A stretch of 63,745 nucleotides of DNA, the filler included, from Octopus bimaculoides (taxonomy: Eukaryota): NCBI RefSeq assembly GCF_001194135.2. It is 7 parts of 5 records of this genome, joined end to end, with 100 filler letters (N's around TTAATTAATTAA, not from the genome) between each part and the next. Parts side by side here need not be neighbours in the genome. Positions count along the whole stretch, not along the records: positions 1 to 23,532 come from NC_069004.1; 6 more parts are not named here. One strand, given 5' to 3'. Below the pieces are notes generated by a model, which did no database searches, was not told the origin of the DNA, and was given only the letters and a program-made list of their open reading frames with translations. This document shows positions 3,583 through 23,532 of the stretch, piece by piece; position 1 is the first letter of the stretch, and each line of letters opens with the position of its first letter. The position numbers were made by a program, and so were the translations under genes.

Positions 3583-3615
<33 letters not shown>

Positions 3616-4913
3616 TACATACATACATATACATGACAGGCTTCTTTCAGTTTCTGTCTACCAAATCCACTCACACTCACAAGACTTTGATCAGCCCGAG
3701 GTTGTAGTAGAAGACACTTGCCCAAGTTGCCACACAGTGGGACTGAACCTAGAACCATGTGGTTGGGAAGCAAGCACCTTACCACACAGTCACGCCTGCA
3801 CTTATATGTTTCAAAAATCCTATTATATTTTTATAATTAAATATTATTAGGAATTGTATATAAAAATAATTATTAAAATATTTTGTATATTGTAGAAGTA
3901 TAACCAATTTTATTGCACATAAACTTCAACATCAAAATCCTATACGGACCCCTCCAAGGATCATGTGAATCTCAATTAAGAATTACTGGTCTAACGAGAA
4001 CAGCTTCTATCATTTACAGATTTCTGATGTTCCATTCTGTGGTTCTAATGTTGACATTGATAATCTGAGTACAGCTTTTTCCTGGATGCCTTTCAAAGCT
4101 ATAAATGTCAAATGTGAACTGATGTATTGTCTTTTTGTTATGTATATTTCCCGTTAGGCTTTTACAAAAGACACATGAAATGTGTGTGTCCTATCAATCT
4201 CGAAAGGATTAAGACTCATGACCTGATACAGTAATTTAACATAAGTTGCGTTTAATGGTCCACAAGAGTATTTAAATCTTTATGATTTGGACAGCCAATT
4301 AATGCAATATAACATTTTAATTAATGTTACTTAATGTGATTGTGTTCATCATCATCATCATCATCATTGTTTTAACGTCCACTTTTCCATACTTGCATGA
4401 GTTGAACAGAATTTGTGGAAGTGAATTTTCTATGGCTGGATGCCCTTCCTATTACCAACCCTCACCTGTTTCTAAGTAATGTAATATTTCCTCATGACCA
4501 GACATGTTTTTACAGAATACTGGAAACGTTTTCATAGAATACTGGACACTACTTGGAAGATGGTGACATTTATTTACAACCATCATGTGATATCAAGACA
4601 AGGACACACACCTACCCACACATGTATGTATTATATATTACATGCTTGCTTCCCAACCACATGGTTCTTCTACTATAGTCTCAGCCTGATTAAAGCTTTG
4701 CAAGTGGATTTGGTAGACGGAAACTCAAAGAAGCCTGTTGCGTGTATATATATATATATATNNNNNNNNNNNNNNNNNNNNNNNNNNNNNNNNNNNNNNN
4801 NNNNNNNNNNNNNNNNNNNNNNNNNNNNNNNNNNNNNNNNNNNNNNNNNNNNNNNNNNNNNNNNNNNNNNNNNNNNNNNNNNNNACACACACACACACAC
4901 ATATATATACATA

Positions 4914-12800: not shown

Positions 12801-15800
12801 GAAATATAACATACAGCTCAAACTACTTCATAATAAATGACAGCACATCAAAATTTGGAAGATGTACTGGATCTATAGAATACATAAAAGTATTTGACAA
12901 GTTATCTACACACCACAGCCTGTTTGACCAAACTCTGCTGCCGAGGAATACACAACCGAAATGTTTGATTTATAGAAAAGTTCGCTAATTATAAGGATTT
13001 TTATAGGGGCTGTTTCTTCAAAGTTATAAGAATATTTGCTTAGCTCCATGTTGGTTCTGACTGAGCAGCCCTATGATCAAAGACCATTTCAACTTCACAG
13101 CTATCTTTTTCTGCACGAGTGAGATCGTTGCCAGTGCCGCTGGACTGGCTCCTGTGCAGGTGGCACATAAAATACACCATTTCGAGCGTGGCCGTTGCCA
13201 GTACCCGCCTGACTGTCCCTTGTGCCGGTGGCATATAAAAGCACCCACTACACTCTCGGAGTGGTTGGCGTTAGGAAGGGCATCCAGCTGTAGAAACTCT
13301 GCCAGATCAGATTGGAGCCTGGTGCAGCCATCTGGCTTGCCAGTCCTCAGTCAAATCGTCCAACCCATGCTAGCATGGAAAGCGGACATAAAAACGATGA
13401 TGATGATGATGATGATGAATGCACCCTGGAATACATTATCTAATGTGGTTTTCCTATATTTTAAAGATTTTATGGGTGTGATCTGAGAGAGATGAAGCTG
13501 TTATTTCTAGCTAGTTAAGTGATTGCATAGAAACTCCCTGGTTGGTTCGGGTTTTATAGAAGTTTCTAATAAGGGTGGTTATTATTGCTATAACGTAGGG
13601 AATTCTCATAAGGGTGATCTGTGAAGGTATAATAAAAATGTTGTGAAATAAAGGTGGTTTGTGACAGGATGTTGTAGTCAGGAACTAGAAAATTGTATTA
13701 TTTTCTGTAACTAAAAACTTTTTACATCTATTTTTTCCTTATATATATGGCTCCTAAAACTTTGATAATTTGGATATGGAGGGACTGAAACTGCTGGTGA
13801 TGATGATGATGGTAAGAATGATAAAACATTTAAAGATACATTCAATACTAAATAAATTTTAAGTTTCAGCAGATTTTGAATTATTACAATTATGGGCATA
13901 CCTTAGAGATCATGGAATCTCTCTAAGTCGAGTTGCTACTTCTCCACATTGAGAAGTAACAGCTCTAGTCCTAGGGACATGTGATAACAATGTTGGGTGG
14001 AATTCTGGTTTAAGAACCCCATAGAGCCCCACGTAACATTTTAATTTTTTGAAATTTTTAGAAAACTTTTGTGAATATGTCTTTTACACACTGGAATTCA
14101 TATGATTATGAAAAAAATTTTTTTATTTAAAAAATTTTTAAGACCCCATTCCCCCATAAACCCTAAAATTTTCACTCATTTTCAAATTTTTTTTTTTTAA
14201 ATCAAGTGTTTAAAACATGGACAGTCTGAATTTCTTGCTTAAATTCAGCAATGGATCACCCTTGGGTGCACCATCATTCCATTAAATGTGTTTATGGGGA
14301 GAAGAATATTGAAAAACATCAATACATTTCAGAGAATCAAAGAAACGAGGAAGATATTAGGTGGTTGTAAGACAAGCTAAAAACAACAGCTAAATTGCTC
14401 TTAAATCACATACAAAAATTTTTTTTCTTTTTGTACAATCATATGAATTCCTGTGTATAGAACACAAATTCACAGAGATTTTCTGAAAATTCCCAAAAGT
14501 AAAAACGTTATGAGGGGTTATATGGAGTGTTTAAACCACAATTCCACCAAATATTGCTGGAAAAAAACTGCAAGACTGATTAAGCTGAGCCAACTGGCAA
14601 GAAATTTACAAGTAGACCAAGAACGAGAGGGTAAGACGATATCCAATGTCTCAATAAGTTGTGTTTAGGAATCCAGCCAGCAAGTCTAATGGCATCTGAT
14701 AAGACCTTATAGAGGAGGTACCTGATGGCTATACCTCAAAGCCCTCCAAGAATAGCGGGTGGAGAAGATGGATGGATACAACTGTATTTTTGTTTTAACT
14801 AATGTTTGCTCTTTTGAACAGATACATCAGAAAAACCTTCGGGGTTTTTCTGATGTATCTGAAGCAGTGTTGGGCAATAAAAATAAAACATGTTTACATA
14901 CTGAGTTGTACTCACCTTTATCTTTGGTAAATCTATCACAGAATTCTTCAAATGTTCCAACAAATTTCAAAGGTGTCAACATTTTTAGGAAGTTGTAGTA
15001 TGAAATTAGAATATCCTTTGGATTTCTAACAACATAAATTATCTGAAAAAGAAATACCATCATAATTACCAGCATTTTTAACTATTCCATATGTAAATCA
15101 TCAACATTTTTAAGAACTATAATTGTATGCAAGAAATAAATGCCAAAAAAATTTTAGTTACAGAAAATAGCAGAATTCTCTATATTATAACTGTAGTGTG
15201 GAGGCGCAATGGCCCAGTGGTTAGGGCAATGGACTCGCAGTCGGAGGATTCCGGTTTCGATTCCCAGACCAGGCGTTGTGTGTGTTTATTGAGCGAAAAC
15301 ACCTAAAGCTTACGAGGCTCCAGCAGGAGGTGGTGGTGGTGACCCCTGTTGTACTCTTTCACCCCAACTTTCTCTCACTCTTTCTTCCTGTTTCTTGAGT
15401 AACGCTGCGATGGATTGGTGTCCTGTCCAGCTGGGGGGAACACATACGCCATAGAAATCAGGAAACCGGGCCCATGAGCCTGGCTAGGCTTGAAAAGGGC
15501 ACATAAATAAATGAAATAACTGTAGCATCAGCCCTAATTTAAATTTGTTGTAACCTTAGTGGCTTAGTGGTTAAGGTATTCAGTTCATGATTGTTAGGTT
15601 GTGAGTTCAATTCCCAGTGGTCCATTGTGTCCTTGAGCAAGAAACCATGTTGGATTTTCTTTATTTTCTTTTACTTGTTTTAGCCATTGGACTGCAGCCA
15701 TGCTAGAGTATCAGCTCCATCTTGATGGGTTTAGTTGAACAAATTGACCCCAGTATTTATTTTATCAGTCTCTTATGCTAAATTGCTAAGTTACAGAGAC

Positions 15801-18800
15801 ATAAACAAACCAACACTGTTTGTCTAGCGGTGGTGGGGACAAACACAAATGTAAAGACACACACGCACAAATATAGACATATAAATACACACATATGTAT
15901 ATATGTGTGTGTTTGTATGTATGTAAGCAATAAGACAAGTCCATATATACATTAGTATGTATGCGAGTGTCTACATATACCATTTGGTACACAGACATGC
16001 TGTTCTTGACTCTCCCTTGATGTCCTTATTATTAAAATACTTTGATACTATTGGATCCTGCAAATAATTAATTAATCAAGTAAATACAAACATACAAACA
16101 AACACAATATGCTTCTTTCAGTTTGTCTACCAAATCCACTCACAAGGCTTCGGTCAGCCTGAGGCTGCAATAAAAGAGACTTGCCAAAGGTGCCACGCAA
16201 TGGCACTGAACCCAGAATCATGTGGCTGGGAAGCAAATTCCTTATCTCAAAACCCACATAGCATATCTAAGAAAAAAATTACTTTGAATTTTTTTTGGTA
16301 GTACTGCCTGTCTGATGATGAGTCACGTCTTGAGAAAGCTTACCCATGCTTGCACTACAGACTAATATTACTCTGGCACATCACATTATTCCTTACAGAA
16401 TCTATTTTTTCTTTTTACTGTGATGATTCTATTGTCTCCTTTAGATTAAACAAACCTAGGGTAACGTGGTGGTGGAATAATACAGTAGACAAGGCCATTA
16501 GAGCAAAAGTCCTGGAAAACATGGAAGAGTAGGGGTAGCAGGGAACTATATCAGATAACCAGAAGGGAGGCTGGGAGACAGGTATATGTAGCCAAGGGAG
16601 AAGCAGAAAAGAAGAAGTTTGCCAATGTTCAGCAACGTGAGGACCAAAGAACTGAAGTATTTCGGATTGCTAGACAGGGTGTGAGAAAAAATTGTGATGT
16701 TACAGGAGAGAAATGTGTCTGCATGGATGATGGTGCATTTGCTTTTAATGATTCTACAAAGAAAGAGGCATAGAGATGCCATTATGAAAGGTTGCTGAAT
16801 GTTGAGAATGAACGGGAGGAGGAGAGGACTAGCTACCCGAATTGATAGCACCCTGGTAGATAAAGCAATTAAGGATATGAAGTCAGGAAAAGCCCCCTGG
16901 CCCATCAGGAATCACTGCTGAGATGCTCAAAACATCTGATGGTGTGGGTTATGGTCTAGTCACCCATTTTGTAAATCAGGTAGTTCATGAAGGAGTCATA
17001 CCCAATGACTGGTGTAGCAGCACCATAGTCAACTGCTACAAAGGTAAAGGTGATGCTTTAGACAGAAATAACTACAGGGGTATCAAACTGTTGAATCAGG
17101 TGATGAAGGTCACAGAGAGGGGCATAGCCCAACTAATTAGGGGAGAGAGTCTGCTTAGATGAAATGGCAGAAGTAGAAGAAATACTACATCATGTGTAGT
17201 ATTTTTAAGTTTAAAAAGCACTGACTTAGAAGGGTAGCAGAAGTAAACTGGAATGAAGAATAAAAGGGTGACAGACAGACAGAAAGATAGATAAACAGAT
17301 GGATTGATAGATGGATGGACAGACAGACAGGCAGACAGATAGATAGATAGACACAGAGAGAGAGAGCTGAATGACAATTATTGATCAGATGGAATAGAAA
17401 CAGTAATTGGTGTGATGAAGGAGAGTGACAAGTACTGAGGTGTAGGGAGGGAGTGATAGAGAGAGAGAGAGAGAGAGAGCAATAGATGTCAACAAGTGAT
17501 AGAGGAAAGAATAATGTCAGAGAGAGAGAGAGAGTGATGGATAGCAATGAAGACAGATGTGGGTGAGTGAGAGTGATTGATATAAATAAGCAATGGGGAG
17601 AGAGTAATGAGAAAGTGAGAGAGGAAGAGAAAGAGAGAGAAAAGGAAGGAACTAATTAGTGGCTGGTAAGAATGAAGCATGATGGTAAAGGTAGGACTAG
17701 ATGCAGATTCAATGTGATGCAATTCCTTGTTAATATAATAAACATGATGGGAGAAACACAGCTGAGAGATAACAAAGAGGTGGTGGGAGCAGAGAAGAAT
17801 GGCTGTTGAAGACTTAAGAGTATAATCATAACTATGAAGGGAGACCCAAGTATACATGTATAGATAATAACCCTTTCTGTTGTAGTCACAAGAAAATTTG
17901 GGTTAGGGGGCTAGTTGAATACATTGACCCTAGTGCATGACTGGTACTTATTTAATTCACCCTGAAAGGATGAAAGGCAACTAATCAATCAAAGTACTTA
18001 TCTTCTTTTTTTTTTTTTTCAATCTTGGTACTTATTCAATTGATATCTTTTGCTGAACCACTAAGTTATGGGGACATAAACAAACCTACACTGGTTGTCA
18101 AGTGGTGGTGGGGAACAAACACAGACACATACACATAAACACACATGTATACAATGGGCTTCTTTTGGTTTCCATCTACCAAATCCACTCACAAGGCTTT
18201 GGTTGGCCTGAAGCTGTATTAGAAGAGATTTGCCCAAGGTGCCATGCAGTAGGACTGAACCTGGAACCATGTGATTGGGAAGCAAACTTCTTACCACAGA
18301 GCCATGCCTACACCTCTAATAACAATAATAACAATACTCAAATATAAACCCAAGTCAACCTCGGTAGAATTTGAACTTAGAACATAGAGATAGACAAAAT
18401 GCTGCTTGACATTTTGCCTGGCATGCTAACAATTCTTATTTCTTTATTGCCCACAAGGGGCTAAACATAGAGGGGACAAACAAGGACAGAGAAAGGGATT
18501 AAGTCGATTACATCGACCCTATTGCGTAACTGGTACTTAATTTATCAACCCCGAGAGGATGAAAGGCAAAGTCGACCTCGGCGGAATTTGAACTCAGAAT
18601 GTAACGGCAGATGAAATACTGCTAAGCATTTCGCCCAGCATGCTAATGTTTCTGCCAGCTCGCCACCTTAGATATAGATAACAATAACAAAACAGAAAAA
18701 GAACATTTACATTTGGTTTGACTGTTGAAAGCTGTTCTGGAAGGAGATGGAAGGGCAAATGGCTTTTGATCAGTCGAGGCGATTCCTTAGCAGCTATGGC

Positions 18801-21800
18801 AGGCAATCCAGGATAAATATTTTCAAGAAAATGGAATCGTTGTTCAATGTTTTTCTCTTCTTCTTGTGAAATGTCAAGATTTGAATGGATGAGGTAGACA
18901 ATTTCTTGAACCCATGTAGTTCCTGGAAAAGACAAACCATTACACACACATATTTAATATAACAATAATAATGGTTTCAAATTTTAGCACAAGGCCAGTA
19001 AGTTAGGGGGAGGGCATAAGTTGATAACATCAACCCCAGTGCTCAATTGGTACATATTTTATTGACTCTGGAAGGAAGTAAGGCAAAAATAACCTTGGCA
19101 GAATTCGAACTCAGAACATAAAGACACAAATTGTCACTAAGTATTTTACCCAGCATGCTAATGATTCTGCCAGCTCGCAGCCTTAATAATAATGATAATA
19201 AAAATATCCTTCTTATTATAGGCACAAGGCCTGAAATTTGGGGGAAGGGTGTAAGTTGATTACGTCAATCCCAGTGCTCAACTGGTGCTTATTTCATCGA
19301 CCCCGAAAGGATGAAAAGCAAAGTCAACCTTGGCGGAATTTGAACTCAGAATGTAAAGATGGATGAAATGCTGGTAAGCATTTTGCCGAGCATGCTAACG
19401 ATTCTGCCAGCTCACTGCCTTAATAATAATAATAATAATAATCCTTTCTACTATAGGCACAAGGCCAGGAATTTGGGAAGAGGGGGATAGTTGATCACAT
19501 CAAGCCACAGTACTCGACTGGTACTTAATTTATTGACCTTGAAAGGATGAAAGGCAAAGTTGACCTTAGTGGAATTTGAATTCAGAATGTAGCAGCAGAT
19601 GAAATACCGCTAAGCGTTTCGCCCAGCATGCTACCGATTCTGCCAGCTGAAAGGATGACAGGCTAAGTCAACTACAATGGAATTTGAACTCAGAGAGTTA
19701 AGATTTGGAAGAAATACCACCATCGCTTTAATGATTCTGCTAGCTCACCATTTACATACAAGGCCAGCAATCAGTATTTGATTGGTACTTCATTTTAACG
19801 AGAGTATTACATGGTACCATTACGTTTCCAACAAAGAACTGCATGTGTACACACATCGGCCTGCAGCCTCCCACCTCATTGCCATCCATCACATGAGCTA
19901 GTACAGACATGTCCTCTGCATCCTGCTGGTCATCCTACCAGAGCTTTACTCTCGTTTGACATAGCAGCTGCAGACTGGAAGAGGCCTCATGGCACCAGGT
20001 GGCTGAACGAGATTGGGGAAGATCTCCAGAGGCTCAACATAACCTTGGAGGAAGTAAAAGGGCTAGCATGGGACTGCCAGCAATGGAGAGAGCACTGGTG
20101 AACCCAGATGGCTCTACTCATGAAGATGTCTCTGGGACCACTAACCTGGGATGACCCCAGCCTCATCAAGCAAGAGCGTAAAGCAAAAGAGGAAAGACAA
20201 AGTTGACCCCAGAACAAATGATGCAGAATATTTCTTCCAATGCTCTAACGATTCTGTGAATTCACCACTCTAATAATAAGAACAGTTTCAAATTTTGGCA
20301 CAAGGCCAGCAATTTTGATGGAGGAGTTAAGTCAATTACATCGACCCCAGTGCTCAACTGGTACTTATTTTAATTGCTGCTAAAGGGATGAAAGGCAAAG
20401 TCTACCTGAGTGGAATTTGAACTCAGAACATAAAGACTGATGAAATACTGCTAAGCATTTTCCCCAGCATGCTATTCTGCCAGCTTGCCACCTTTAACAA
20501 TGATAATGATACTCAAATATAAACCTATGTAGCAGATGTATAAACAGGGCAAATTCAACTGTTTCTCTGTAGCTTGAACAACCTTAATTGATTTTCAAAT
20601 CTTACTCAATACTCATCAGAGGCTTCTACATCAATCTGACCAATTACAGAGAGACAAGCAGCCAATCTGTTTATATACACAACAGTTTCAGTGGCTACCG
20701 TGAACTGGAGCTACAAATTTGCAAACTGTAATTGTTAACACCATATTTTATATCAGTCCATACAGTATCATCATCATCATCGTTTAACGTGTGCTTTCCA
20801 TGCTGGCATGGGTTGGACGGTTTCACAGAGAATTGGCAAGCCAGAAGGCTTAACCAGGCTCCAATCTGATTTGGCAAGGTTTCTACAGCCGGATGCCCTT
20901 CCTAACGCCAATCACTCCGAGAGTGTAGTGGGTGCAAATTTACTCCATGACTTCAGAGAAATGTCTTATTTAACTGCGATATTTATTTTCTGTAAAATAA
21001 GTACCTGGCAACATCTGACAGGCAGGACATCATAATCAGTTCAGCTTGGTTATCTCAACAAGAAGAAGGCCTACTCAGTAATTATCTTGACTTGTAATAA
21101 AACATTAAAACTTTCACATGAGGTTTCAATTTTAGGCATATCACTGTAGTTAATGGTGAGGCCTGAAAGCCTCAAAGCTTTTTGGTTGGGACTGGCATAC
21201 TACATGAAACATAAAACATCAATCTTCAGTTTTTGTAGAGCAGAGAGATCCACTGATAATTCTCTGATTGGACTCCACATTTCGTAGCGCTGGCACGAGG
21301 GTCAGTCAGGTGGTACTGGCATCGACCACGCTTGAATGGTGCATTTTACATGCCACCAACACGGGAGCCAGTCAGGCAGCAATGGCAATGACCACACTCG
21401 AATGGAGCCTTTTATGTGCCACTGGCACAGGAGCCAGTCAAGTGGCACTGGCAATGACCATACACGAATGGTACTTTTTACGTGCCACTGGCACGGGACA
21501 TAACTTATGTAGTAGATATTTAAACAGGGCAAATTTAAATTAATTTCTCTGTAGATTAAAAAGACAATGGTGAAAAGCCTTGAGCAATGTTCGAGCCTTA
21601 TTGAGTTTGCATCATATAGTCGTTAGGATGGGCATCCAGCTGTAGAAACTCTGCCAAATTTAGATTGGAGCCTGGTGTTGCCATCCGGTTTCACCAGTCC
21701 TCAGTCAAGTCGTCCAACCCATGCTAGCATGGAAAGCGGACGTTAAACGATGATGATGATGATGATATATACACACACACACATACATATGTATATCAGC

Positions 21801-22931
21801 TTGCTGATTCCTTCAGTTTCACTTCGAAACGGTAGCAAATAAGAACCCCGATGAAGCTGTACTGACAATGACACCAGAATACATATCTAACAGTGTGCAG
21901 TCAATGCAGTTGAAATGTGCATATGTCCACATAACTGTTTAATAAAATTATAGATGTGGAAAATCTTCACTCTCCTTATCATTATTAATACTATATATAT
22001 ATATATATATATGATGGGCTCTACCATCGAAGATGATGCATGTATGAGCTTTCAGCTTTTGCTGAACGACCTGCACAAATAATTTGTTTATAGTGATCAA
22101 ATATTCATACTGCACATTAGCTTACTCTCTCCATAAAATTAACATCTAATTAGAGGTACTGAACAACAATATATAGTGTATCAGCAGAATGTTTAAGCAC
22201 TGGGGTCAATATAATCGACTTACCCCTCCCCCAAAATTTGAAACTGATATTTCTGCAGGCGTTTTTTTCCCAACTTTCTTATCCACCATTATATGTGCAT
22301 AATACGGAAGATTGCCGAAGTCATCTTTCTAGAAATGGAAAGTGTGGGCAAAATACACCACGAAAACTTATGTTAATTACCACCTGACTGGAATCAACTT
22401 ACCTGACCGTGGCCAAGACACTACCCACACGTCATCTGGTCTAACGTCAAAGTCTCGAATCTTAGGTAAATCGTTTTCTAACATTGCGGGTAGGACAACC
22501 CCTTTGTATTTTATCAGCTTCTGTCGTCGACCGAAAGGTGCATCGTAATAAGTGTCAATATCATGAACAAATTTTTTGTACATAATTTTCAGGCGAGAAA
22601 ACAAAATAGTGCCGAGAAGTAGAGCACCAATGGTTATGGAAGCGTAAACCATGTAAATGATCCTTGGATCCATCTGTTCCTGAGAACTCTTTCTTCTGTA
22701 AAGTGGTGCCGGTTTCCATCTTGTCTGTTGGTGTCCCGGAGAAAACAAACCTTGTTGAGATGATGAATGTTTCGACGTCAAACACGATAGGGGTTGTATG
22801 AAAACACATGCATGAGGGGATAAAGATTGTCTTAAAATAGGGCGAAGTGAGACCGTGGGATGAAAACGAGTTAAAGTGCCGAGTTGACGGCTTAATAAGC
22901 GAGGAAGAAACAAGGAATTTATTATTGACAT
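6699..22931 (-). CDS. SULT4A1-like: Cytosolic-type (PAPS-dependent) sulfotransferase, SULT4A1-like core, 6 coding exons, 427 aa, with N-terminal presequence and TM helix
   Basis: Exons of 529+212+127+98+184+134 = 1284 nt join in frame (intron phases 1,0,1,0,1) with canonical GT-AG. Motifs: 5'-PSB loop SWPRSGTTW, catalytic His in IKSHLP (H231), 3'-PB motif RNPKDILISYY, YEDLHKDL, C-terminal FLRQGKVGDWK. The family assignment rests on recalled vertebrate sequences. Confidence 0.95.
6935..7470 (-). mobile_element. RTE-clade LINE 3' fragment
   Basis: FNRVHKPEIRESLQIELLLL...GRP...SLSWLCLG...TLPTQPSQE; homologous to 7765-8175 in the opposite orientation. Confidence 0.75.
7494..7710 (+). mobile_element. 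SINE family C, antisense to SULT, in intron 5
   Basis: Head GGTGGCAAGCTGGTAGAAT, Nin-like core, AAAATTTGAAATCATT tail. Confidence 0.85.
7765..8175 (+). mobile_element. RTE-clade LINE 3' fragment
   Basis: MGFLLRVSGVMLLDRVHSSAIRE...QSYGHVIRM...RPRMKWLDYI, typical of the RTE post-RT C-terminus. Confidence 0.8.
9230..9530 (+). mobile_element. RTE-clade RT fragment
   Basis: VVQEGAIPNDWHSSIIANCYKG and EMQFSF...STFDA; same family as 16455-17150. Confidence 0.65.
9844..10027 (-). CDS. SULT coding exon 5 (DLAGNVQRIAKFLG...SVNYSWWDGYGIRDQTQTQFLRQ)
   Basis: Acceptor gttatttggcag|GAT; donor CAAG|GTGAGT; 184 nt. Confidence 0.95.
10056..10195 (-). mobile_element. SINE family C, sense to SULT, ~30 nt from the exon 5 acceptor
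   Basis: Reverse complement of the family C head and core; a second copy lies at ~10910-11025(-). Confidence 0.85.
10221..10772. mobile_element. Tigger/pogo-like MITE, 552 bp
   Basis: TA TSD at 10219-10220 and 10773-10774; imperfect TIRs CAGTAATACCTTAGTTTACAAG versus revcomp CAGTAATACATCGATATACGAG. Confidence 0.75.
12287..12384 (-). CDS. SULT coding exon 4 (VYYSPWGKHVRTAVDLNQQHHNILIVQYEDLHK)
   Basis: Not in the ORF track; found by reading the minus strand. Acceptor ttgcag|TG; donor AAG|GTAAGT; 98 nt, phase 1 to 0. Confidence 0.93.
12466..12780 (-). mobile_element. tRNA-derived SINE, head B + tail X, decayed
   Basis: Minus strand: head with TGTATCCTTGAGCAAGACA core, then CCTGTAATTCAAAGG...GATCAACTGGAAC tail X. 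Other head-B copies at ~6300-6562(-), ~8620-8770(+), ~15555-15650(+), ~25750-25910(-), ~58050-58140(+). Confidence 0.8.
13100..13415 (+). mobile_element. Retroposon family E (RTE-type 3' end TTAGGAAGGGCATCCAGCTGTAGAAA, (GAT)n tail)
   Basis: Other copies: 4350-4500(-), 20762-20935(-), 21290-21500(-, 5' repeat part), 21620-21765(+), 50555-50715(+), 52385-52692(+). Confidence 0.8.
14916..15042 (-). CDS. SULT coding exon 3 (IIYVVRNPKDILISYYNFLKMLTPLKFVGTFEEFCDRFTKDK)
   Basis: Acceptor tttctttttcag|ATA; donor AAAG|GTGAGT; 127 nt. Confidence 0.95.
15197..15515 (+). mobile_element. tRNA-derived SINE, head A + tail Y, TSD-bounded
   Basis: 10-bp TSD ATAACTGTAG at 15187-15196 and 15516-15525; tail contains a CTGCGATGGATTGG.GTCCTGTCCAG (V-domain-like) block. 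Confidence 0.88.
16455..17150 (+). mobile_element. RTE-clade LINE fragment (pre-RT and RT N-terminus)
   Basis: TWWWN...VDKAI, KAIKDMKSGKAP, IPNDWCSSTIVNCYKGKGDALDRNNYRGIKLL. Confidence 0.88.
18711..18922 (-). CDS. SULT coding exon 2 (GTTWVQEIVYLI...PRLIKSHLPFHLLPEQLSTVKPN)
   Basis: Acceptor gtcttttccag|GA; donor AAT|GTAAAT; 212 nt, phase 1 to 0. Confidence 0.92.
19850..20110 (+). mobile_element. RTE/L2-like LINE C-terminal fragment
   Basis: HPTRALLSFD...WKRPHGTRWLNEIGEDL...AWDCQQWR. Confidence 0.6.
21303..21500. repeat. 66-bp minisatellite (3 units) from the 5' part of retroposon E
   Basis: Unit starts CAGTCA(G/A)G at 21303, 21369 and 21435 (exact 66-bp period). Confidence 0.9.
22403..22931 (-). 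CDS. SULT coding exon 1 (M1-S176): presequence, TM helix, start of SULT domain
   Basis: ATG at 22931-22929 in context aaaaacaATG; ends ...SWPRS G|GTAAG (donor at 22402), phase 1; 529 nt. Confidence 0.9.
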
Positions 22932-22971
22932 TGTTTTTGACTTTCACATGTGTGAAATTTTAGTTTTACCG

Positions 22972-22979
22972 CCGGAAGT
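22972..22979. promoter_or_regulatory. Ets/GABP-type consensus site CCGGAAGT upstream of the SULT start codon
   Basis: Perfect CCGGAAGT ~40 nt upstream of the ATG, at the edge of a CpG-containing first-exon region. Confidence 0.45.
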
Positions 22980-23532
22980 TGAATACATTCAAGGGAAATC
23001 ACTCTGAACAAACTATCAAGAAATCACTTTGAATAAATCTCCCAAGAAATAAAATTCCGGCAGAACTGAGTTTTAACATTTTAAAACATCTTTACGAAGT
23101 CAATAAAAGAGTCTAATCTATTCTATCATTTACTTACTATAATTAATTACAAAAACAAAGTCTGTAACGAAAAGGTAACTAATTAGGCATAACTTCCAGA
23201 AAATGGATACTTTTTAACGAAATTTTCAATAAATACCGTTTAGATGCTGTAAATTCAGAGTTTATAGGGATTTGTTACAGAAAATTTTTACCGAGGGGTT
23301 TCAAAATATTTAGACGATCCGGGTTTTTTTTTTTTACCTACATAACTTTCAAGAAAATGGGTATTTTTAATGAAAGTTGATACGGACACCTTTTAAACGG
23401 CATAGATTACGGTTATAAAGAAATCTGTGGGGGAAACTTTTTTCCGAAAGGGTAGGGAGAGGAGTTCCGCATCAAGAAGACCACATAAGTTGGCGATCTT
23501 ACGGTACGAGTCCTTAATATCGGCCTTTTCAG

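Follow-up and report, generated by a model that had tools for sequence, protein, structure and literature searches.

The DNA studied here is a window of 63,745 nucleotides from Octopus bimaculoides (RefSeq assembly GCF_001194135.2), joined from seven parts, the first of which (positions 1 to 23,532, from NC_069004.1) carries on its minus strand a gene for a sulfotransferase of the cytosolic type (SULT). In the encoded protein a long basic leader, a single hydrophobic helix and a second basic stretch precede the catalytic domain. The ATG at 22931 opens the sulfotransferase open reading frame (ORF), and the segment 22596-22931, singled out in a first-pass annotation, covers exactly codons 1-112. 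Joining of six GT-AG exons yields a coding sequence of 1284 nt and a protein of 427 aa, the length that had been predicted. The octopus gene is already annotated in RefSeq, where an entry 100% identical to this protein (XP_014780530, Octopus bimaculoides) is named 'sulfotransferase 4A1'. The first-pass annotation had placed leader, helix and catalytic domain in one uninterrupted exon. This was wrong, since exon 1 (22931-22403; all features of the gene given here lie on the minus strand) stops at codon 177 and the other 250 residues are encoded in five further GT-AG exons. Exon 1 ends with a GTAAGT donor inside the 5'-phosphosulfate-binding loop (WPRSG|TTW) for 3'-phosphoadenosine 5'-phosphosulfate (PAPS). 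Exon 2 (18922-18711) supplies the TTW of this loop together with the catalytic His231 (in IKSHLP), and exon 3 (15042-14916) the 3'-phosphate-binding residues R253 and S261 (in VRNPKDILIS). Exon 4 (12384-12287) is matched by tblastn in O. sinensis and Argonauta, exon 5 (10027-9844) was placed by the GT-AG gene model and tblastn, and exon 6 (6832-6699) carries the GxxGDWK of the 3'-phosphate-binding motif, a degenerate KTVE motif and the stop codon.

The start codon M1 (22929..22931) is the first ATG past an in-frame TGA located 15 nt upstream, and this start is common to the O. sinensis, O. vulgaris and Argonauta proteins. Its context (acaATGt) had been called a good Kozak match, which holds for the A at -3 but not for the T at +4. 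The adjoining block 22932..23194 aligns to O. sinensis over 263 nt at 93.5% identity with a single gap column, and could be either the 5' untranslated region (UTR) portion of exon 1 or the core promoter. Within it, a possible splice acceptor (ttacag) ends at 23162, and several short upstream ATGs are present.

The catalytic domain was recognised by Pfam as Sulfotransfer_1 (PF00685) at residues 165-411, with an E value of 1.1e-72 and 244.9 bits against a cut-off of 22. The best sequence matches in the PDB were SULT1C2 (192 bits, E 1e-55) and SULT4A1 (185 bits, aligned over residues 136-351), followed by SULT2A1, 1A1 and 1E1. An AlphaFold model, built from an alignment of 15 members of the clade described below, has a predicted local distance difference test score (pLDDT) above 90 through most of residues 89-423. 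Foldseek comparison of this predicted model gave template modelling scores of 0.87-0.92 to SULT1E1, 1D1, 1A1 and 2A1, at a root-mean-square deviation of about 2 Å. All of the 44 PDB sequence matches and 50 fold matches listed were proteins of the cytosolic-type SULT fold. H231, R253, S261, R382, G384, G387-D388-W389 and the GTTW loop are invariant in the 15 clade members. The 5'-phosphosulfate loop reads PRSGTTW, a conservative exchange of Lys for Arg relative to PKSGTTW, and the Arg is found in cephalopods and chitons. Residue 383 is Gln in O. bimaculoides only, being Arg in O. sinensis and Lys in Argonauta. The KxxxTVxxxE dimerisation motif is degenerate (KHYLTPFFSR in octopus), and throughout the clade R, K, Q or H stands in place of its final Glu. 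Sequence and model together suggest that the protein is probably an active PAPS-dependent enzyme of the cytosolic-SULT fold.

Cytosolic SULTs are the textbook soluble phase-II enzymes. With the soluble SULT1/SULT2 proteins (human SULT1C2, SULT1E1, SULT2B1) the octopus protein has in common the fold, 31-37% identity, the PAPS-binding loops and the catalytic His. However, it departs from their plan of ~280-320 aa, having 427 aa with an 86-aa leader and a helix at residues 91-112. Unlike the soluble enzymes, it thus carries 130 extra N-terminal residues (leader, transmembrane helix and basic flank), in addition to the Lys to Arg exchange of the cephalopod loop and the degenerate KTVE motif.

Both the RefSeq name and the second-best PDB match point to SULT4A1. 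Orthology to SULT4A1 was rejected by a bootstrapped neighbour-joining tree (297 columns, 200 bootstraps) whose deep nodes among protostomes have weak support. There, vertebrate SULT4A1 groups with SULT4A1-like proteins from hemichordates and a sea urchin at 100% support; the octopus protein falls outside this clade, which itself joins vertebrate SULT1/2/5 at 85%. The anchored cephalopod (100%) and gastropod (98%) proteins are placed elsewhere, among protostome sequences, with weak deep support. Similarity to vertebrate SULT4A1 is high over the first two thirds of the domain, and the HMMER alignment to it ends at residue 351. SULT4A1 has neither leader nor anchor, and its PAPS loop (GTS/GTG-LL), shortened loop 3 and C-terminal third differ from those of the octopus protein, which has a canonical GTTW loop and a full-length C-terminal third. 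PMC8803991 states that an invertebrate SULT4A1 homologue has not been reported. According to the same source, SULT4A1 has no anchor and binds peripherally to the outer mitochondrial membrane, on its cytosolic face, which agrees with the remark in the first-pass annotation that mammalian SULT4A1 occurs at mitochondria without a leader of this kind; SULT4A1 is also placed at mitochondria in PMC11275347. A link between this association and the octopus-type enzyme is speculative.

Relatives of the octopus protein were collected in a first search, and then in a profile search of 1.8 billion representatives combined with name look-ups. The first search returned gastropod, chiton and other transcript homologues of ~400-475 aa in which a helix and a basic flank follow a basic leader. 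Leader and helix were also found in Biomphalaria, Gigantopelta, a second chiton paralogue and the oyster Ostrea, as well as in the mites Dinothrombium and Halotydeus, the copepod Caligus and the rotifer Didymodactylos. A sequence from the flatworm Macrostomum, N-terminally partial and outside the scored set, has a basic N-terminal stretch and a helix. Judged from these sequences, the layout is that of a protostome family and not a cephalopod novelty. Any implication for organellar sulfation, which had been drawn for cephalopods, would accordingly not be limited to them.

The leader had been described as lacking Asp and Glu in residues 1-84, with 8 Arg and 3 Lys, and as rich in Ser and Leu. We confirmed this composition: the first acidic residue is E85, and residues 1-86 include 14 Ser and 13 Leu. 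The chance of finding no Asp or Glu in 84 codons is ~1.5e-5 given the acidity of the remainder of the protein and ~0.03 once the scarcity of G in the leader's own DNA is taken into account; taken from the octopus sequence alone, this statistic is of moderate strength. The recurrence of acid depletion in 29 relatives appears to us the stronger evidence. Across 16 orthologues the leader comprises 50-146 aa, with 0-6 Asp/Glu and a net charge of +6 to +19. When 29 proteins were pooled (2368 leader residues), Asp and Glu made up 3.5% and Arg and Lys 16.9% of the leaders, compared with ~12-14% acidic residues in the catalytic domains. The composition is of the mitochondrial-presequence type, as had been claimed, and it is kept across very divergent relatives, although the leader sequence itself is not.

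Comparison with other cephalopods bears on whether the leader is translated. O. vulgaris and O. sinensis have orthologues of 427 aa in which the leader is open and of equal length. The Argonauta hians orthologue (425 aa) has the leader motifs MS[IV]INS, SLSPH, QPLSCLT and YRRKSSQ[ED]QMDPR in common with octopus, and the Argonauta genomic DNA keeps the frame open from the corresponding ATG onward, with in-frame indels. Conservation of the frame of residues 1-86 in other octopods, a point that had been raised earlier as decisive, was thus found in all three species. Between octopus and Argonauta the leader has a proportion of changed sites of 0.37 at nonsynonymous (pN) and 0.81 at synonymous positions (pS) by Nei-Gojobori counts (Fisher p=3e-9), in a comparison whose synonymous sites are saturated and whose tblastn-based codon alignment is biased toward amino-acid matches. 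Relative to O. sinensis the leader contains zero indels, whereas the adjoining 259 nt of intron show 27 gap columns. Squid (decapodiform) transcript assemblies also encode a leader. In one squid species, stops upstream fix the start at MSSTLFKRV, giving a protein of 408 aa with a 67-residue leader and no acidic residue before position 60. In a snail transcript with a called product that begins at the helix, the frame is open upstream for 77 acid-free residues. From these sequences we conclude with high confidence that the leader is translated protein under constraint.

The same comparisons make it very improbable that the leader lies outside the protein and that Met87 (22671..22673) initiates a 341-aa enzyme with an N-terminal anchor (MDPR plus helix). 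Met87 is conserved in Octopus and Argonauta, and its context (cagATGg) has G at +4, with a weaker -3 base; fast evolution of the leader between Octopus species would also fit such a start. However, the frame is open and constrained out to Argonauta, M1 has A at -3 as well as being the first ATG past the in-frame stop, out-of-frame ATGs lie between M1 and M87, and four RefSeq accessions share the identical 427-aa protein. Squids, gastropods and other relatives, whose transcripts encode leaders, have no Met at this position, and Met87 was rejected as the true start. Because the squid transcripts encode a leader without a Met next to the helix (GVDHRILY, GVDRRILL), Met87 is not a conserved initiator.

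Several gene models and called products required correction. Squid products of 518 aa and 508 aa are gene-caller artefacts (TTG start or UTR included). The 518-aa product was rejected: its 'start' is a TTG picked by a prokaryote-style gene caller, and stops in a sister species show the upstream part to be UTR. Long 5' leaders containing several upstream ATGs as well as short upstream ORFs precede the coding region of the squid transcripts (L003 1-216; L006 1-355). An apparent helix-first isoform (P0015, locus L005) was likewise rejected, the contig being 5'-truncated, and in P0024, another such form, the frame is open up to the contig end. The public models P0009, P0015, P0019, P0016 and P0032 begin at or just before the helix or are without it. 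The anchored architecture is under-annotated in public gene models.

Downstream of the leader, the hydrophobic segment I91-S112 (IIYMVYASITIGALLLGTILFS; 22596..22661) is followed by the basic flank RLKIMYKK (residues 113-120; 22572..22595) and then by the Sulfotransfer_1 domain, an order that the first-pass annotation had given correctly. A short tether and the start of the SULT fold (residues 121-177; 22403..22571) extend to WPRSG and the GT donor, and this part aligns to SULT1C2 residues 14-50. In the AlphaFold model, residues 89-123 form a helix with pLDDT above 90. The octopus helix contains no Pro and has a sum of ~ -0.1 on the Hessa scale over 19 residues; across 16 orthologues the values are mostly -1.5 to +2.8, reaching +5.4 in one sequence. 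The helix is Pro-free in 16/16 orthologues, both flanks are net positive in all but one (lgn20, with an N-flank of net 0), and the C-terminal flank carries +2 to +6 over 15 residues in every one of the 16 scored. Among molluscs the helix pattern Y-x-S-x-x-x-G-x-x-L-L is conserved. Only ~20 residues lie between the helix and the first strand of the SULT fold, and therefore the enzyme would be held near the membrane. The sequence data support the proposed single transmembrane anchor: besides translation of the leader, tethering of the enzyme via one transmembrane helix is very probable. That the gene encodes a real leader-bearing, single-pass membrane SULT is in our view highly probable. The small-xxx-small pattern of the helix (S98-x-x-x-G102) is kept across molluscs, and the KTVE motif used by soluble SULTs for dimerisation is lost; dimer contacts may have shifted into the membrane.

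Marginal hydrophobicity, absence of Pro and positive flanks fit arrest in the TIM23 translocase as well as Tom20-type outer-membrane anchors, and fit a strong signal anchor for the signal recognition particle (SRP) less well. To our knowledge, every membrane-bound sulfotransferase described in animals is a Golgi type II protein. By analogy with these enzymes, the octopus helix would be an SRP-recognised signal anchor in the endoplasmic reticulum (ER) or Golgi, with the basic N-terminus cytosolic, the SULT domain lumenal and PAPS delivered via Golgi transporters. The Golgi enzymes (HS3ST, NDST, CHST, TPST) are likewise membrane-anchored and PAPS-dependent, with one N-terminal helix, and the octopus protein shares with this plan a helix near the N-terminus with a basic N-flank; the leader amphipathicity, which is not significant (see below), also fits it. 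However, Golgi sulfotransferases combine short cytosolic tails and long stems with glycosylated lumenal domains and belong to other sequence families, unrelated to the octopus domain, which matches only cytosolic SULTs. Here the stem is only ~20 residues and the tail is 86 aa and leader-like. The invariant columns of the clade alignment contain no Cys, and hence no Cys pair, and no N-x-S/T glycosylation sequon. The C-flank is as positive as the N-flank, which disfavours translocation, the helix is of marginal hydrophobicity, and a cytosolic tail would leave unexplained an acid depletion that ends at R-x-[FYL]-[SA]. We consider an ER or Golgi type II protein unlikely.

The order of elements resembles that of mitochondrial inner-membrane proteins such as Tim50, OPA1/Mgm1, AIF, HtrA2 and D-lactate dehydrogenase, which carry a presequence and a stop-transfer helix and face the intermembrane space. 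As in the Tim50/OPA1 type, an acid-free basic leader, a candidate site for the matrix processing peptidase (MPP), a Pro-free helix ~90 residues in, charged flanks and a large C-terminal domain follow one another. None of those proteins is known to have a sulfotransferase domain, and the resemblance is one of sequence patterns. We favour, at a probability of roughly 45%, a cleavable presequence and a stop-transfer anchor that would place the protein in the inner membrane with its catalytic domain facing the intermembrane space. A mitochondrial location in some topology is, on the same features, fairly probable. On the favoured reading the enzyme would have gained a two-part sorting region at its N-terminus. 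Residues 1 to about 81 (22689..22931; no Asp or Glu, basic and rich in Ser, Leu and Pro) would act as the mitochondrial presequence, imported via TOM and TIM23, and MPP would cut near R80-K81|S82. The Pro-free helix 91-112 with its charged flanks would then halt transfer and be released laterally into the inner membrane, leaving a 9-residue stub in the matrix and, on the intermembrane-space side, a catalytic domain near the membrane. Cytosolic PAPS would reach the intermembrane space through outer-membrane porin. Likely substrates would be small hydrophobic or membrane-associated molecules, sterols for example, which is a guess.

Import of this kind is supported by a motif in the relatives. 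The MPP R-3 pattern R-x-[FYLIMW]-[SAT] occurs 13-21 aa before the helix in 12 of the 29 proteins (as RNLS, RTFS, RYFS, RHYA, RYYS or RPFS, for example), where 1.4 would be expected, and none of 3000 shuffles reached 12. Acidic residues account for 2.0% of positions before the motif and 11.6% between motif and helix (p=3e-10), a jump of the kind expected where a cleavable presequence gives way to an ordinary mature N-terminus. In the octopus protein, R79-R80-K81|S82-S83 (22683..22697) is a candidate MPP site of the R-2 type by analogy with the motif of the relatives, and it precedes the first acidic residues, E85 and D88.

A number of observations weigh against the import reading. The cephalopods are without a clean R-3 motif, and the octopus R-2 candidate (YRRK|SSQEQMDPR) was chosen post hoc. 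The 29 sequences are related, so that the shuffle statistics for the motif overstate independence; what they show is conservation of a feature, and they give no probability of function. Compared with their own shuffles, the leaders are not significantly more amphipathic (Fisher combined p=0.086, with p<0.1 in 5/29); for the octopus leader, the maximum hydrophobic moment is 0.72 (p=0.057 versus shuffles), and AlphaFold gives a helix at residues 2-15 at low confidence, the remainder being disordered. Between O. bimaculoides and O. sinensis, the ratio of nonsynonymous to synonymous substitution rates (dN/dS) of the leader is 0.51, which is not significantly below 1 (p=0.096), and the non-coding DNA on either side, at 93.5-94.9%, is higher in nucleotide identity than the leader, at 89.9%. 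Because of this p value and because the leader is less conserved than its flanks, dN/dS for this species pair is too weak as a coding test. By these sequence comparisons the leader is evolving fast, as targeting peptides do. A full-length octopus transcript assembly was not found in the transcript collection searched. In a nemertean (a Tubulanus isoform), the tubeworm Lamellibrachia and Priapulus, a short N-terminus directly precedes the helix, which suggests a cytosol-facing signal anchor in those proteins. Finally, after the proposed cleavage the positive charge of the octopus protein lies on the C-terminal side of the helix, and the positive-inside rule would favour a domain facing the matrix or the cytosol.

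Each of these two orientations can be set out as a reading of its own. With a cytosolic SULT domain, the helix would be an anchor of the outer mitochondrial membrane or of the ER surface, comparable to Tom20, Tom70 or microsomal P450, or else it would be arrested in the manner of PINK1 with the leader directed inward. Moderate helix hydrophobicity combined with a positive C-terminal flank, as seen here, was reportedly described as a Tom20-type outer-membrane signal by Kanaji et al. in 2000. Relatives with just a short N-terminus and a helix exist, and PAPS is produced in the cytosol; SULT4A1 itself is found on the cytosolic face of the outer membrane (PMC8803991). Signal-anchored proteins have short N-termini, however, so that a conserved, acid-free leader of 40-146 aa with an MPP-type motif would be left unexplained, and arrest of the PINK1 kind is a regulated exception. 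A cytosol-facing enzyme on either membrane is, in our estimate, distinctly unlikely.

With a matrix-facing domain, import would be complete, the helix being either not arrested or re-inserted from the matrix side. The positive flank that remains C-terminal of the octopus helix after cleavage would fit the positive-inside rule in this orientation. We know of no PAPS carrier into the animal mitochondrial matrix, and this speaks against a matrix enzyme. So do the Pro-free helix and its flanking charges, features which, as Meier et al. are said to have found in 2005, favour arrest, and the strongly positive N-tails of the gastropod proteins, which are poor for export. We regard matrix localisation as highly improbable.

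Extended to the relatives, the favoured inner-membrane topology leads to a broader proposal, which we put forward tentatively on the sequence features given above: a protostome-wide clade of 'cytosolic-type' sulfotransferases may be imported by mitochondria and tethered to the inner membrane on its intermembrane-space side. Molluscs, mites, copepods and rotifers would belong to this clade, along with anchor-only or flatworm relatives. If this is true, PAPS-dependent sulfation of small molecules or lipids would take place inside an animal organelle other than the Golgi. Mitochondrial membrane cholesterol is sulfated by SULT1C2 (PMC11411706). On the same premise, this action and the peripheral association of SULT4A1 could be late traces of an ancient connection between mitochondria and sulfation, or else convergent versions of it.

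In the open-access literature, we found no description of a SULT with presequence and anchor, or of a SULT that is mitochondrial or anchored. The gene itself is already known under a name; its architecture, conservation and likely meaning appear undescribed in open-access text. Sulfation biology would gain a further compartment from a SULT clade that is conserved, anchored and probably mitochondrial. Such a clade would also offer a simple tool for studying the role of sulfation at mitochondria, a question raised by the orphan SULT4A1 and by the reported effect of SULT1C2 on mitochondrial cholesterol and respiration. For annotation, a correction would follow: databases call these proteins 4A1, 1E1, 1B1, 1C4 or 'estrogen sulfotransferase', and several models are cut off at the helix.

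The introns and the 3' flank of the gene contain repeated DNA. A repeat of ~200 bp resembling a short interspersed nuclear element is present in five copies, one of them partial (3605-3807, 1389-1589, 18125-18313, 16086-16244 and 4666-4761). The copies are 78-80% identical to each other and occur in both orientations, in introns and in the 3' flank, several of them next to TA/CA microsatellites. At 4762-4884 in the 3' flank, 123 N mark an assembly gap beside the truncated copy. A second repeat family is found at 21294-21498 and 13125-13245, its intron 1 copy being internally tandem with a period of ~66 bp. When eight further ORF fragments of the piece were scanned with Pfam, the only hit was the remnant of a mariner-type transposase at 2239-2418 on the minus strand (PF01359, E 1.6e-16), in which the frame is broken, with neighbouring fragments around 2633-2785.

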